A stretch of DNA of 64,000 nt from Epithemia pelagica (GCA_946965045.2 OX337232.1:1054001-1118000), one strand, 5' to 3'. Numbered from the stretch's first letter, positions 36,126-45,640 are shown. Made by a program: numbers and translations. Notes: generated by a model from the sequence alone, not told the origin.

Positions 36126-38731
36126 TCATACCATGGCCAGTTCGGGTTCTTTCACTTCTTCCTCTTTTTCTATTGCCACTGCCTCGTTTGTTCTTTCCTC
36201 TTGGGCTTGCACTCTCAGCGCTTTTCGAGAGGCCGAGAAGCGCTCCAGTTCTATGGGAGCATCTTCACCAGTGATGAGAGAAGCCATGCAATCCCCAATC
36301 AGCGGGCCAAACTTGAAGGCCCGACCACTTCCGCCCGAAAAGACTGCCACCTTGTCCGAAACCTTGTCCATGACAAAATACGAGTCCTCCGTCATGGTGT
36401 AGGGTGATGTGAAGGATTCGACGCGGTCTTCGACGTCCGGAAGGTGCTCGGCAACCCATCCGTCCATCAAATCAAGAATGGTTTGGGACCCCTGGTAGTC
36501 AAAGGTTTCCATGCCCTCCAAGTCTCCTCCCGACGGAAAGTCGACACCCACCTTGACGTACGTGTATTCATCCTCTTTGCCATTCTCGGTCTTGAGAGAT
36601 TCCGTGGCACTCGCGGGAAAGACGTAGTACAAACCCCCATCTTCCTTGCTTTGTCCCTTGCGAAAGTGAAAGGCCTGGGGAATCGAGGCGGCCACAGATT
36701 TCTTCACGCGGTAATGAGCCCATTGGATTTCCCACACCTTGAGGTTCAGCTTGGGGAGTCCGGCGGATTCCAGAACGCTGTTGGTCCACGGTCCAGCAGC
36801 AATGACTGCGTTATCGGCCTTGATTGTCAGGCCGTCTTCGGTGGTGGCGGTCACTCCGTCCTCGTGAACGTCCAGAGAAGTGATTTTCGTGTTTACATGG
36901 ACATCGCAAACGTCGCTAGCAATCTTCGCCATGGCGGCACAGGCCTTGGAGGCCTTGATGTGACCGGCATCGGCTTCGTAGACTCCGCTGTAGGGCATAC
37001 CCTCGCATCCCTTGAGAGAAGGATATTCCTTGGCAATCTCTTCTCCGGTTTCGAAAAAGGTGTGCTGCAGATTCAGATTCTCCATTGTCTTTTTGGCACC
37101 CAAAACAGACCCTTCAACGGTTTCTCCCGTGTCTTCTCCATAGAAGAGGAGACCATTCTTCTGTAGTAGGGTTTCACCGCTCTTGTCTTCGACGTCCTTC
37201 CACCTTTCGAGAGCGGTAGCTTGCATCTTGCTGAAGAATTCATCCGAATACATTTTGCGGTACATTCGAGAATCGCCATTGCTACTGGCCGTGGATGGCG
37301 CCAGGGATGCTCCTCTTTCGACCAAAATCGAGTTGACGTTCTTTTCCCCGAGGGCAAATGCCGTGCTGCATCCGGCCATTCCTCCCCCAACGATCAAAGT
37401 TTCGGTTTTCTTGGTATTTTCTTCGATCCATTCGGGAAAGGTCTTTCCGATGGGATCTCCCTTTCGAGAAGGAACCACATCAGCCGTGACGGATTCCATT
37501 TTATCGGCATTCTTTCCGGAGAGCTCGACCATATTCCGTGCTTTCTGTTGGCTCAATCCGCGGATCCATCCATACATGAGTGTGGGTTCGACGGTTTGGT
37601 AGAGGTCAATGTCGTACCACTCGACCGAATCGGCTAGAATGGCTCCGGCGCTCGAAATGCTCTCGGGCACGTGGAACACGCCGCGTTCGGCAAATGTAGA
37701 TTTTGCCTCGGTCGAGGCAAAGGGAGAATTCGTCGCTCCCGTGCAAAACTTGATTCCTTCGGGAAAGGTCGCAGCGACTTGTTCGGTAATGGCGAGGGAG
37801 TTGGCACACGGCACCAAGAAATCACACGGTGTGGAGGCCCAATCCTCAATGGGTGTGCATCCCGCAATGTTCGAAGCACCCTCACGAATGTCACAGGTCT
37901 GGACCTTTTTGGCACCCAAGCGAACCAGCTCCTTGGCGACGGTGGATCCAACCTTTCCACATCCCTGGACGGTAAATGTCAGGTCGGAAATCTTGACGCC
38001 ATCGTCACTGTGTGATTCGATCAATCCGAGAATACTTCCAATCACCGAGGCGGCAGTTGCAACGTTGGTATCGACAGCGGAATCTCTTCCTGCCAGAACA
38101 TATTGTTCATTGGTGGCTTCGGTAAGATAATCCATATCAATATCACAGGTATTCAAATCACATCCTGTGTAGACAGATCCAGAAAGAACTGTAGAAAGCG
38201 AGAGGGGGAAAATTGTTAAAAAAGGAATTCGGAAAATGGCAGGTAATTCGAGAAAATAAACATTGTATCCTTACCTTCGAGTGCTTTCGCAATATCTTCC
38301 ATCAGTGCTTTTCGTTTGATCTTGTCGAGAGGAATATCGGAGTTGGCCACCAATTTAGCTCCCGAGAAGCCAGTGCGAAACATGTCATGTTTGCGGGTCA
38401 TTCCTTCCGCCAATCGAACGGCATCATCAATGGCGTCCTTGTCCGATTGGTAATCGAGCAATCGAATTCCACCGTTGCCAGGACGTTCGTGGTCGAAATC
38501 CCCGTCCGTCGCAATGTACAATGTGATGCCCTCCTGCCGGACGGGTGCTTCAAAGACCTTGGCGGACCGAACCGACTCCACCAGGTGAAAGAATTCGTGG
38601 ACGGCCTGGTTAATGTCGGGAAACGACGCCGTTGGCGGCTTTCGGGCAAAGGAAGACAATCCATTCACCGAGGAGACGATTAGAACCCCGAAAACGATTG
38701 CCGAACGTATAGCAGAGCGAAACGAAACCAT
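36126..38731 (-). CDS. Fusion: Glu/Leu/Phe/Val dehydrogenase plus monomeric sarcosine-oxidase-like FAD enzyme, probable plastid presequence, 2 exons, 839 aa
   Basis: GNGGIR...RLAEGMTRKH..GFSGAKLV; intron 38189-38274 restores KALE-VLSGSVYTGCDLNT; VQGCGKVG; DFLVPCA; then IVGGGMAG, SSNGDSRMYRKMY, YTMTEDSYFVMD, GGSGRAFKFGPLIG. Confidence 0.85.
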
Positions 38732-39385
38732 GCTGTCCTTGTGGTTGTGGTTGTAGCTCTGGTTTGTCTTTTGCGGGAAGCTAACTTATGAAGAGACGCA
38801 TGGCAACGCATTGCTGAGTCCTCCTACGAGGGAACTGCCGCACATAATCTCGGATCTTTGGCATCTGTCCTGAAAAAAGTTGACTCAGATTTGTGAGCCC
38901 AACTCAACGCCAATTACGCATGTGTGGTATGTGGTGTCGCCTCGACATCCAATTTATTGGGTGGAGGAGGTCTCTCCGTAGTTCGTTTCAATCCTTTCGA
39001 GGAGGGTCGCCCGGCGTGAAAGAAGGAATAATATGCCCTCCTTGACATATGCCCTTTTCGATAGCTTAGGACGAGAATAGCGCATGCCATTGAAAACATA
39101 TGCCTGTAGAGTCATCCTCCCCATCGCGCCGGGGGACCGTCCAAAAGGAATACAATGGAGAGGACCGACCACGGCCTGTCACTCTCTCTGACGCACAAAC
39201 TATTACTCAGCGACAATAAGAATATTTGGTTCGAACGTCATTTGAAAGTCTAACACGACAACCAATGACTTTTTAGATCCAAACCTGTTTTAGTGAAAAT
39301 GTGAAGTGGGTTTGTTTCATGTGAAAGTATGAGTGGTTCTCAAAGTTCCAAAATATCAAACAATAGCTCATTCGACACTTGAATC

Positions 39386-44600: not shown

Positions 44601-45640
44601 CTCCTTTGGGTGCGCTCTTGATTGGCGAGATTTTGGCCAATGACCCAAACATGCCCAAGGAAGGCTTTTCCATCCTTCCCTGTTCTCGAACGGCGGGTAC
44701 ACTGCTCACCACGGACGATCGGTTCAAACTCATGAGCTTTACGGGCTCTCCGGGTGTGGGATATGCTCTCAAAGAGCAGGCGGGGAAAAAGCCCGTCGTT
44801 TTGGAATTGGGTGGAAACGCGGCCTGTATCATTGATGATTTGAATGTGGGACTGTCCCAAGTGGTGGAGGAAGTGGTCCATGGTGCCTTTTACCAATCGG
44901 GACAGAGTTGTATCAGTGTCCAACGATTGTTTGTCAATGAAAACATCTACGACGAGTTCCGGACGGCCCTGGTGGAAAAGGTCCAGAGTCTCAAGGCAGG
45001 GGATCCCATGGAGGAAGACACGTTTATTGGGCCATTGATTAGTGAAACGGATGCCATTCGCGTCCAAGAATGGGTCGAGGAGGCTGTCGCGGGTGGAGGT
45101 ACCTTATTGACGGGTGGACAACGGTTTGATCGAGTCTTTGTGTCACCGGCCGTGGTGGAACATGTCCCCCTTGATTGTAAACTCTACGTGGAAGAAGTCT
45201 TTGGTCCCGCCGTGACCCTTTCCAAATATTCCGATTCCGACTTTGCCGGTGTTGTCAATGAGGTGAACAATAGCAAGTTTGGATTGCAAGCGGGTGTGTA
45301 TACCAACAATTGGAATCGGGCTCATTATGCCTTTGATCACATTGAAGCTGGAGGTGTTTGCATCAACACGACACCGTCGGTCCGGATTGACTCCCAAGCG
45401 TGTACGTATACCTCTCTATCTATCAACATGTTGTTGTTGTTGTACCGTGTCCATTGAGGTCGCTGTTCAACGTCTCACTTTTTTCATGTATCTCTGCAAC
45501 TTGCTGCATACATATTTATTCTACAATTTGCAGATGGGGGAGTCAAGGATTCTGGATTGGGTCGAGAGGGCATCAAGTACGCGATTGAAGATTATACGGA
45601 ATTGCGAGTCATGGTCATGAAAGATGCTGGCAAGATATAA
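41636..45640 (+). CDS. Fusion: ThDP-dependent ALS-like 2-oxoacid decarboxylase plus ALDH21-like aldehyde dehydrogenase, 6 exons, 1150 aa
   Basis: FGIPGEENL, RHEQAAGFMA, GDGG..MN..ELAT...LNDN; P/A-rich linker; FTGSPGVG, LELGGN, GQSCISVQR, EEVFGP, YGGVKDSGLGREG. GT-AG introns 43049-43206, 43825-43913, 44331-44422, 44487-44567 and 45402-45533 all preserve frame (3453 nt in total). Confidence 0.85.

Follow-up and report, generated by a model that had tools for sequence, protein, structure and literature searches.

Are the three neighbouring genes at positions 36126-45640 of a 64,000-nucleotide stretch of the pennate diatom Epithemia pelagica (OX337232.1:1054001-1118000) parts of a single metabolic pathway, and what would such a pathway make? 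All positions given here are counted on that stretch, the whole of which we refer to as the window; the nearest named relatives of its proteins come from Pseudo-nitzschia multistriata and P. multiseries, at 75-85% identity. An earlier note on this DNA had chained all three genes into one route from an amino acid to a methylated acid. Here we present evidence that the first two genes, which encode an ELFV dehydrogenase joined in one protein with an MSOX/NikD-like oxidase, and a SABATH methyltransferase, very probably form one pathway and that the third, a fusion of a thiamine diphosphate (ThDP) enzyme with an aldehyde dehydrogenase (ALDH), is not part of it. The adjacency of genes 1 and 2 is far beyond chance; that of gene 3 is without support. 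The predicted active sites of genes 1 and 2 suggest, tentatively, a route from lysine to homarine.

Gene structure and predicted targeting

Gene models were read from the sequence and each exon was then checked separately. All exons of the three genes are open in frame and all introns run from GT to AG. Pfam searches recovered five catalytic domains in three intron-bearing genes between 36126 and 45640, confirming the domain content that had been predicted for them. The features of genes 1 and 2 are as follows.

38731-38275 + 38188-36126, minus strand: gene 1, ELFV dehydrogenase::MSOX/NikD-like oxidase, 839 codons
36126-38156, minus strand: open reading frame (ORF) with PF00208 (ELFV_dehydrog) and PF01266 (DAO), from Pfam
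38275-38731, minus strand: gene 1 exon 1, with signal peptide, ASAFAP-like site and N-terminal ELFV part, from reading of the sequence
38189-38274, minus strand: gene 1 intron, 86 bp, GTAAGG...CTACAG; splicing restores the conserved ELFV motif GSVYTGCD
37452-38188, minus strand: gene 1 exon 2, first part, the remaining ELFV domain (catalytic Asp, Rossmann GxGxVG, Asn, invariant pocket Asp)
36126-37451, minus strand: gene 1 exon 2, second part, MSOX/NikD-family oxidase dependent on flavin adenine dinucleotide, then a short acidic tail; stop codon at 36126-36128
38732-39385, no strand: intergenic region between the divergent genes 1 and 2, 654 bp, presumed bidirectional promoter
39386-40453 + 40565-40744, plus strand: gene 2, SABATH methyltransferase, 415 codons
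39386-40495, plus strand: PF03492 (Methyltransf_7), from Pfam
39386-40453, plus strand: gene 2 exon 1, presequence and SABATH-type S-adenosylmethionine-dependent methyltransferase, from Pfam
40454-40564, plus strand: gene 2 intron, GTAAGT...AATTAG
40565-40744, plus strand: gene 2 exon 2, conserved C-terminal 59 residues (TTRTWS...MDYVH...EK) and stop codon

Exon 1 of gene 1, which carries the GNGG.R motif, the substrate-carboxylate Lys and the catalytic Lys, is 61-64% identical to the P. multistriata and Fragilariopsis cylindrus loci. The 654-bp spacer presumably serves as a promoter shared by the two genes. Each of the two encoded proteins starts with a signal peptide, after which comes an ASAFAP-like site (…LSS, then FA, in one; …TAA, then FAS, in the other), and the module is probably imported into the plastid. 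Gene 3 has no presequence, its ThDP domain beginning at the start of the protein, and the same is true of its orthologues. The earlier note had recorded this contrast as a caveat to its own three-gene scheme, and it proved to be the right clue.

Synteny and repeated fusion link genes 1 and 2

In all five named diatom genomes that were fetched, namely F. cylindrus, P. multistriata, the centric Cyclotella cryptica, Nitzschia inconspicua and Cylindrotheca closterium, the ELFV-oxidase and methyltransferase genes are arranged head-to-head. The gap between the two genes is about 0.45-1.0 kb and the remaining neighbours differ between species. A scan of metagenome contigs with an alignment of the methyltransferase yielded 80 loci, 14 of which combine a methyltransferase at 50% identity or more with at least 2.2 kb of upstream flank. 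The ELFV gene is head-to-head with the methyltransferase in every one of the 14, and in 11 of them the oxidase continues in the same gene.

The same domains are also found joined in single polypeptides. With the large exon of gene 1 as query, ELFV-oxidase fusions were identified in many diatoms and among green algae, namely Dunaliella, a pedinophyte, Pycnococcus and Chloropicon; in Pycnococcus the methyltransferase gene is directly upstream of the ELFV-oxidase gene. Four proteins of 1083-1185 amino acids, one from Nephroselmis pyriformis and three from uncultured eukaryote-like sequences, have the order ELFV-oxidase-methyltransferase, the last part matching PF03492. Among bacteria, scanning genomes with the oxidase domain turned up a 1170-residue ORF of Shewanella surugensis (locus L007, 5676-9188) that combines all three domains; its neighbours are an MFS transporter (3867-5066) and a transposase-like ORF (2552-3148). 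A metagenomic protein of 828 residues fuses ELFV and SABATH domains and has no oxidase domain (L064, 8645-11131; also L063 and L068), and no DAO gene was seen within its contig. In the bolidophyte Triparma strigata (L004, 372-7822, a locus that contains a run of N) a separate ELFV gene is head-to-head with the methyltransferase; on its other side lie a divergent DAO-family gene, which matches the diatom oxidase over 55 residues at only about 31% identity, and then an aldo-keto reductase.

In a tree of the ELFV-oxidase part the triple fusions fall into at least two separate groups. The Shewanella fusion sits on a very long branch near the green-algal sequences, and horizontal transfer is possible in its case. 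In the same tree the ELFV-oxidase protein P0149, from a transcriptome labelled Corethron (MMETSP0169), groups tightly with Pseudo-nitzschia and not with centric diatoms; that transcriptome may be contaminated or mislabelled.

Because the divergent arrangement is kept in both pennate and centric diatoms and the domains have been fused repeatedly, we place the three domains of genes 1 and 2 in one pathway, and we hold with high confidence both that these two genes belong together and that gene 3 stands apart from them. The earlier note had named synteny across relatives as a check on its scheme of one pathway for all the neighbours. The scheme stands for genes 1 and 2, which are together in every named diatom genome and in each of the 14 metagenomic contigs above, and fails for gene 3, which accompanies them in none. 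Conserved two-gene metabolic clusters with Rosetta-stone fusions behind them are seldom seen so clearly in a eukaryotic alga.

Gene 3 encodes a widespread ThDP::ALDH fusion

The features of the third gene, which starts 891 bp past the end of gene 2, are the following.

41636-45640, plus strand: gene 3, ThDP::ALDH, six exons, about 1150 codons
41636-43953, plus strand: ThDP N, M and C domains, PF02776, PF00205 and PF02775, from Pfam
43965-45457, plus strand: PF00171 (Aldedh), from Pfam
41636-43048 and 43207-43824, plus strand: gene 3 exons 1-2, acetolactate-synthase-like ThDP enzyme and Pro/Ala-rich linker
43914-44330, 44423-44486, 44568-45401 and 45534-45640, plus strand: gene 3 exons 3-6, ALDH21-like ALDH

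Flanks of up to 10 kb around the pair were searched for ThDP and ALDH sequences in the five named diatoms, Triparma, Pycnococcus, Chloropicon, Shewanella and two Streptomyces species. No tblastn match to either domain was found in loci L001-L009 or in the metagenomic contigs that carry the orthologous pair, and the called-gene tables of L010 and L011, which are among the named diatom loci, list no ThDP or ALDH gene. The fusion itself is present in many bacteria (about 1016-1048 residues), liverworts, a fern, charophytes, green algae, a labyrinthulid and a red alga, and gene 3 is colinear over its full length with eukaryotic ThDP::ALDH proteins of about 1100 residues (P0549, P0559 and P0546). 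In the one bacterial ThDP::ALDH neighbourhood that was examined there is no ELFV, oxidase or SABATH gene.

These observations bear on cooperation of all three genes, in which the ELFV domain would turn an amino acid into a 2-oxoacid, the ThDP enzyme would decarboxylate it to an aldehyde, the ALDH would oxidise this to an acid and the SABATH enzyme would methylate the product, which with methionine as substrate would be similar to dimethylsulfoniopropionate (DMSP). Such a scheme has in its favour that the genes are adjacent in E. pelagica and that the family chemistries can be chained on paper. We nevertheless regard it as very improbable: the ThDP and ALDH domains are absent from the flanks and contigs just described, the fusion is widespread and was seen without an ELFV-oxidase or methyltransferase neighbour, the presequences of genes 1 and 2 have no counterpart on gene 3, the oxidase is left without a role, and the methyltransferase is not TpMMT, DSYB or DSYE (see below). 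Since no relative examined has it beside the pair and since it belongs to a widespread fusion family and lacks a presequence, gene 3 is most likely a chance neighbour, unrelated to the module of genes 1 and 2.

What gene 3 does on its own account can be approached through its relatives. Exon 1 alone scores 573.4 bits against the acetolactate-synthase-type model NF006187 (cut-off 509), and the ThDP part has 13bb as its best PDB match (3e-105) and is also near catabolic acetolactate synthases. The ALDH part, with ELGGNA and GQSC catalytic motifs, best matches ALDH21 (5mz5, 5.6e-86); moss ALDH21 is a succinic semialdehyde dehydrogenase that depends on NADP. By its domain content gene 3 is most likely a self-contained 2-oxoacid decarboxylase plus semialdehyde dehydrogenase, and it might possibly convert 2-oxoglutarate to succinate. 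A comparable pair is known from cyanobacteria, whose 2-oxoglutarate decarboxylase, a ThDP protein of the acetolactate-synthase type, as in Synechococcus, acts together with a succinic semialdehyde dehydrogenase (PMC4224347, PMC5160925, PMC10418658). The OgdA/SsaD bypass and gene 3 share this pairing of enzyme types; they differ in that gene 3 is a single polypeptide of about 1150 residues.

A link between genes 1 and 3 after the manner of ScyB and ScyA in scytonemin synthesis, where a tryptophan dehydrogenase is paired with an acetolactate-synthase-like ThDP enzyme, was considered and rejected, the fusion being unlinked to the pair in relatives. No ScyA model is among the 25 best NCBIfam matches.

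The dehydrogenase pocket is polar and acidic

The catalytic Lys, the carboxylate-binding Lys, the Asp, the Asn and the nucleotide fold are invariant in all 16 aligned ELFV sequences, and the catalytic residues align with K66, K78 and D118 of phenylalanine dehydrogenase (PheDH), whose structure 1c1d is the best PDB match of the ELFV part; leucine dehydrogenase (LeuDH) is also among the best matches. With LeuDH and PheDH (1leh, 1c1d) the diatom domain thus has in common the Lys/Lys/Asp/Asn catalytic set and the Rossmann fold, and it differs from them in its fusion to an oxidase and in the residues at its specificity positions. The residue preceding the GG motif is an invariant Asn in these sequences and Ala in PheDH, and the fourth residue after AGG is an invariant Asp, aligned with the Ser of the GGV..S motif of glutamate dehydrogenase (GluDH). 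The positions that govern side-chain specificity are K89/S380 in GluDH and L40/V294 in LeuDH, and a hydrophobic side-chain pocket of the L40/V294 type is not present in the ELFV domain. The invariant Asn and Asp therefore make Leu, Phe, Trp and Met unlikely substrates and favour a cationic side chain, which the polar and acidic pocket would fit; they point to what may be a new substrate class within the ELFV dehydrogenases. At the search threshold the diatom ELFV part had no match among the NCBIfam equivalogs, and the bacterial homologues score 78-90 against the ScyB (tryptophan dehydrogenase) model, for which the cut-off is 600.

Both of the substrate routes that the earlier note had sketched lose ground here. 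Its Ehrlich-type route to a methyl ester fits poorly with the invariant Asn and Asp, and also with the amine oxidase, which would find no substrate in a plain 2-oxoacid. Its methionine-derived, DMSP-like route is a poor fit to the polar and acidic pocket, and the methyltransferase is none of the DMSP methyltransferases known so far.

The oxidase resembles NikD in part of its active site

Because the fused amine oxidase needs a nitrogen that is left after alpha-deamination, a diamino acid would be the expected substrate of gene 1. The oxidase domain scores 123 bits against PF01266, and its best PDB match is NikD (2oln, 1e-28; 103.5 against 77 bits as a single sequence), as is that of its Streptomyces homologue. 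Arg53, Glu101, Tyr258, Asp276 and Lys358 of NikD, all active-site residues, align with invariant residues of the oxidase family (in R-x-x-R, ETVEGS, LYYxF, VGVDF and FKF, respectively). In MSOX the Glu101 segment is missing, and His269 stands where NikD (Asp276) and the present family have Asp. With MSOX and MTOX/SolA the oxidase shares the fold, PF01266, the Arg-x-x-Arg and GxxFKF carboxylate-binding motifs and a C-terminal Y-T-x-T-x-D; it differs from them in the replacement of the covalent-flavin Cys315 and His269 of MSOX by Ser and Asp, in the extra Glu segment common only to NikD, and in the fusion to a dehydrogenase. Against the MSOX model TIGR01377 it scores 142.3, below the cut-off of 479.65. 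From these alignments the oxidase appears to be a third subfamily, plausibly NikD-like in action and not a NikD orthologue.

An MSOX/MTOX-like oxidase that acts on an N-methyl or cyclic amino acid, coupled to a dehydrogenase of the tryptophan type that acts on an aromatic amino acid, would give the module a different meaning, either the handling of tryptophan or indole compounds, for example a route from tryptophan through indole-3-pyruvate to the methyl ester of indole-3-acetate, or the degradation of N-methyl amino acids. Several names point this way: the best NCBIfam name of the oxidase is N-methyl-L-tryptophan oxidase (NF008425), that of the bacterial dehydrogenase homologues is ScyB, and some orthologues of the methyltransferase carry the JGI label indole-3-acetate O-methyltransferase. 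The C-terminal S-P-Y-T-x-T-x-D motif of the oxidase is moreover nearer to MSOX than to NikD. However, the two model scores are under their curated cut-offs (149.6 against 257 for the oxidase, and that already given for ScyB), the Asn and Asp of the dehydrogenase pocket are not hydrophobic, an arylpyruvate offers an amine oxidase no amine, and a demethylating oxidase coupled to a methyltransferase would be futile. With the Asp in place of MSOX His269 and the presence of the Glu101 segment added to these, we consider an indole or N-methyl amino acid pathway improbable.

Bacterial relatives of gene 1 offer a further view of a NikD-like oxidase. Streptomyces mashuensis (L008, 6334-12838) and S. 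griseocarneus (L009, 6796-12732) have an operon of ELFV, oxidase, 4-coumarate-CoA-ligase-like and gamma-glutamyltranspeptidase genes. An acid-CoA ligase that follows ELFV and oxidase implies a carboxylic acid as their product, and the operon may make a picolinate-derived natural product.

The methyltransferase is a deep SABATH branch

The methyltransferase scores 88.2 bits against PF03492 (cut-off 29.8) and is 55-90% identical across its diatom orthologues. It forms a deep branch of the SABATH enzymes, the best solved relative matching at E = 3e-12, and an ESM Atlas look-up returned generic PF03492 clusters only. Coffee trigonelline synthases are SABATH enzymes that N-methylate a pyridine carboxylate, nicotinate. 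The diatom enzyme shares with these and with the fatty-acid O-methyltransferase of Mycobacterium marinum (5f2k) a score above the PF03492 gathering threshold and the HWLS motif with its substrate-binding Trp, which is embedded in an invariant TAMHWLS in the diatom family. It is set apart from the solved SABATHs by invariant motifs of its own, KGCFDVI, EDQxxN and the C-terminal TRTWS...MDYVH, the C-terminal block being conserved in the family alignments. The position of the carboxylate-anchoring Gln25 is occupied by an invariant Cys when counted by spacing from a conserved Tyr, a place at which HMMER alignments to solved SABATHs disagree.

A bacterial relative with 36% identity, which has the family C-terminal block, closes a complete kynurenine-pathway operon on a bacterial metagenome contig of GC 0.60 (L085, 1393-11083; also L086). 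That operon comprises genes for an SDR, an ALDH, 3-HAO, an ACMSD-type amidohydrolase, kynurenine formamidase, kynureninase, a KMO-like flavoprotein and the SABATH methyltransferase. Aminomuconate semialdehyde, a product of the kynurenine/ACMSD pathway, cyclises to picolinate. Two unrelated routes, one from lysine as proposed below and one from kynurenine, would therefore converge on picolinate beside this methyltransferase clade, a context that lends weak support to picolinate as the substrate. Other members of the bacterial subgroup are preceded by a 2-oxoglutarate-Fe(II) oxygenase (L080, 604-2676; L083, 3211-5283; L084, 6032-11030; also L088 and L090), and three contigs of the subgroup have a divergent NAD synthase and an adjoining HalD-like gene, which may be another link to pyridine-carboxylate metabolism.

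A salinity-induced methyltransferase of F. cylindrus, reportedly protein 212856 of Lyon et al., could not be linked to this family, and the enzyme treated by Kettles et al. is a different one. A role as a DMSP S-methyltransferase (TpMMT, DSYB or DSYE) was considered and rejected, the F. cylindrus and N. inconspicua orthologues (OEU19039 and KAG7370601) being different from the assayed DSYE proteins of the same names of species (OEU16654 and KAG7362955), and DsyG and TpMMT being PF08241-type enzymes (PMC11306096).

A candidate route from lysine to homarine

Taken together, the predicted activities can be arranged into the following scheme, for which we infer all substrates and products. The ELFV domain would oxidatively deaminate the alpha-amino group of L-lysine to give 6-amino-2-oxohexanoate, and this would cyclise spontaneously to delta1-piperideine-2-carboxylate (P2C), a cyclisation that is established chemistry. 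The fused MSOX/NikD-like oxidase would then aromatise P2C to picolinate, as NikD does, and the SABATH enzyme, expressed from the divergent promoter common to both genes, would methylate picolinate, most likely on the ring nitrogen, to give homarine (N-methylpicolinate). Lysine is made in plastids, which fits the presequences of genes 1 and 2. For this mechanism in full we put the chances a little short of even. Slightly more guarded still is the broader proposal that the pair is the homarine pathway of diatoms and other eukaryotic algae, consisting of a plastid lysine alpha-dehydrogenase, of a kind not described before, fused to a NikD-like oxidase and a new clade of SABATH N-methyltransferases, repeatedly fused in several lineages into a 'homarine synthase'; it is possible, and we offer it with reserve.

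The nearest known system is the NikC/NikD route to picolinate in nikkomycin biosynthesis of Streptomyces tendae (PDB 2oln, 2q6u, 3hzl), in which, as proposed here, an MSOX-fold flavin oxidase aromatises lysine-derived P2C. The two would differ in the source of P2C, here an ELFV dehydrogenase that uses NAD(P) and is fused to the oxidase, there the pyridoxal phosphate-dependent aminotransferase NikC, and in the fate of the product, which would be methylated here and is incorporated into a peptidyl nucleoside there.

In diatoms homarine is present at millimolar levels; a pathway for its synthesis has yet to be characterised (PMC8269262). No homarine biosynthesis genes are reported in the literature from 2024 onwards that could be searched, and a 2026 paper on a bacterial homarine catabolic operon cites none (PMC13236597).

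A number of observations weigh against the homarine reading. In profile comparisons the oxidase is at about equal distance from NikD and MSOX (174.6 and 171 bits); the covalent-flavin Cys321 of NikD is aligned with Ser (Ala in one member) and its stacking Trp355 with an invariant Arg (His in Streptomyces), and the best NCBIfam name is, as noted above, that of another oxidase. The DAO-family neighbour in Triparma is not clearly orthologous to the diatom oxidase. The solved structure nearest to the methyltransferase is that of an O-methyltransferase, 5f2k, and N- and O-methylation cannot be told apart from the sequence. The kynurenine-operon context is confined to one organism, and that subgroup departs from the diatom family at the GCF motif. 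The public runs that contain the stretch are genomic contigs, without splice joints. Finally, Thalassiosira pseudonana makes homarine, in amounts that drop on warming (PMC12817926), and neither it nor Phaeodactylum tricornutum appears by name among the methyltransferase and oxidase matches listed, where T. punctigera, Detonula and Cyclotella do appear among those to the methyltransferase; the oxidase list is incomplete, the F. cylindrus oxidase model being present at its locus and missing from the list. In Synechococcus, the other major homarine producer, no relative was found by two pattern scans, for the methyltransferase and the oxidase, covering one genome per bacterial species; these scans are insensitive, that for the methyltransferase having given no match at all and so missed the methyltransferase domain of Shewanella, and that for the oxidase matched Shewanella and the two Streptomyces only.

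The same three-domain module could alternatively serve another product, such as the methyl ester of picolinate, a methylated heterocyclic acid derived from a different diamino acid (pyrrole-2-carboxylate from ornithine through pyrroline-2-carboxylate), or an unrecognised metabolite. All of the evidence that links genes 1 and 2 applies equally to this alternative, SABATH enzymes are mostly carboxyl O-methyltransferases, as is the nearest structure, and the module occurs in taxa that are not known for homarine (Dunaliella, Chloropicon and Shewanella) and was not seen, by the insensitive searches described, in T. pseudonana or Synechococcus. On the other hand, no such metabolite is known at a high level in diatoms, in contrast to homarine, which is abundant and for which genes have been lacking (PMC8269262), and the 55-90% identity of the methyltransferase over many diatoms would suggest a major metabolite. 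On balance we judge another product unlikely, though it deserves to be kept in view.

If the homarine reading is correct, its interest extends beyond this locus. Homarine is an osmolyte, a labile bacterial substrate and an infochemical; it ranks with the most abundant small nitrogen compounds of marine particles, can make up as much as 3% of the particulate carbon and, of the metabolites measured along a North Pacific transect, was the most abundant (PMC8269262). As no genes for its synthesis are reported in the literature that could be searched, gene-based surveys are as yet blind to its producers. The candidate, two genes or a single protein of 1170-1185 residues (in Shewanella and Nephroselmis) and simple to clone, would make the origin of homarine directly testable, and, if true, would provide a marker for homarine synthesis in metatranscriptomes; should the chemistry turn out otherwise, the module nonetheless represents a pathway, so far without a name, that many diatoms conserve. 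The ELFV-oxidase plus SABATH module, the triple fusions, the Asn/Asp pocket and the picolinate/homarine link are not described in the literature that could be searched. All five domains belong to known superfamilies, and the module is best filed as a picolinate route of the NikC/NikD kind, with a dehydrogenase in place of the aminotransferase and a SABATH enzyme as its cap.

Flanking genes and sequence variants

Of the ORFs that flank the three genes, that at 33826-35175 codes for a DUF2306 membrane protein and that at 46804-48654 for a protein whose C-terminal domain is weakly kinase/APH-like, and neither is kept beside the pair in other diatoms. Contigs from four public runs (X1-X4) differ from the window at 36126-40800, over the pair and its spacer, by about 50 single bases and two small indels, which are allelic or strain variants; no disruption of a reading frame was noted. 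The spacer between genes 2 and 3, outside the module, contains one further feature.

41103-41274, no strand: perfect (CA)86 microsatellite

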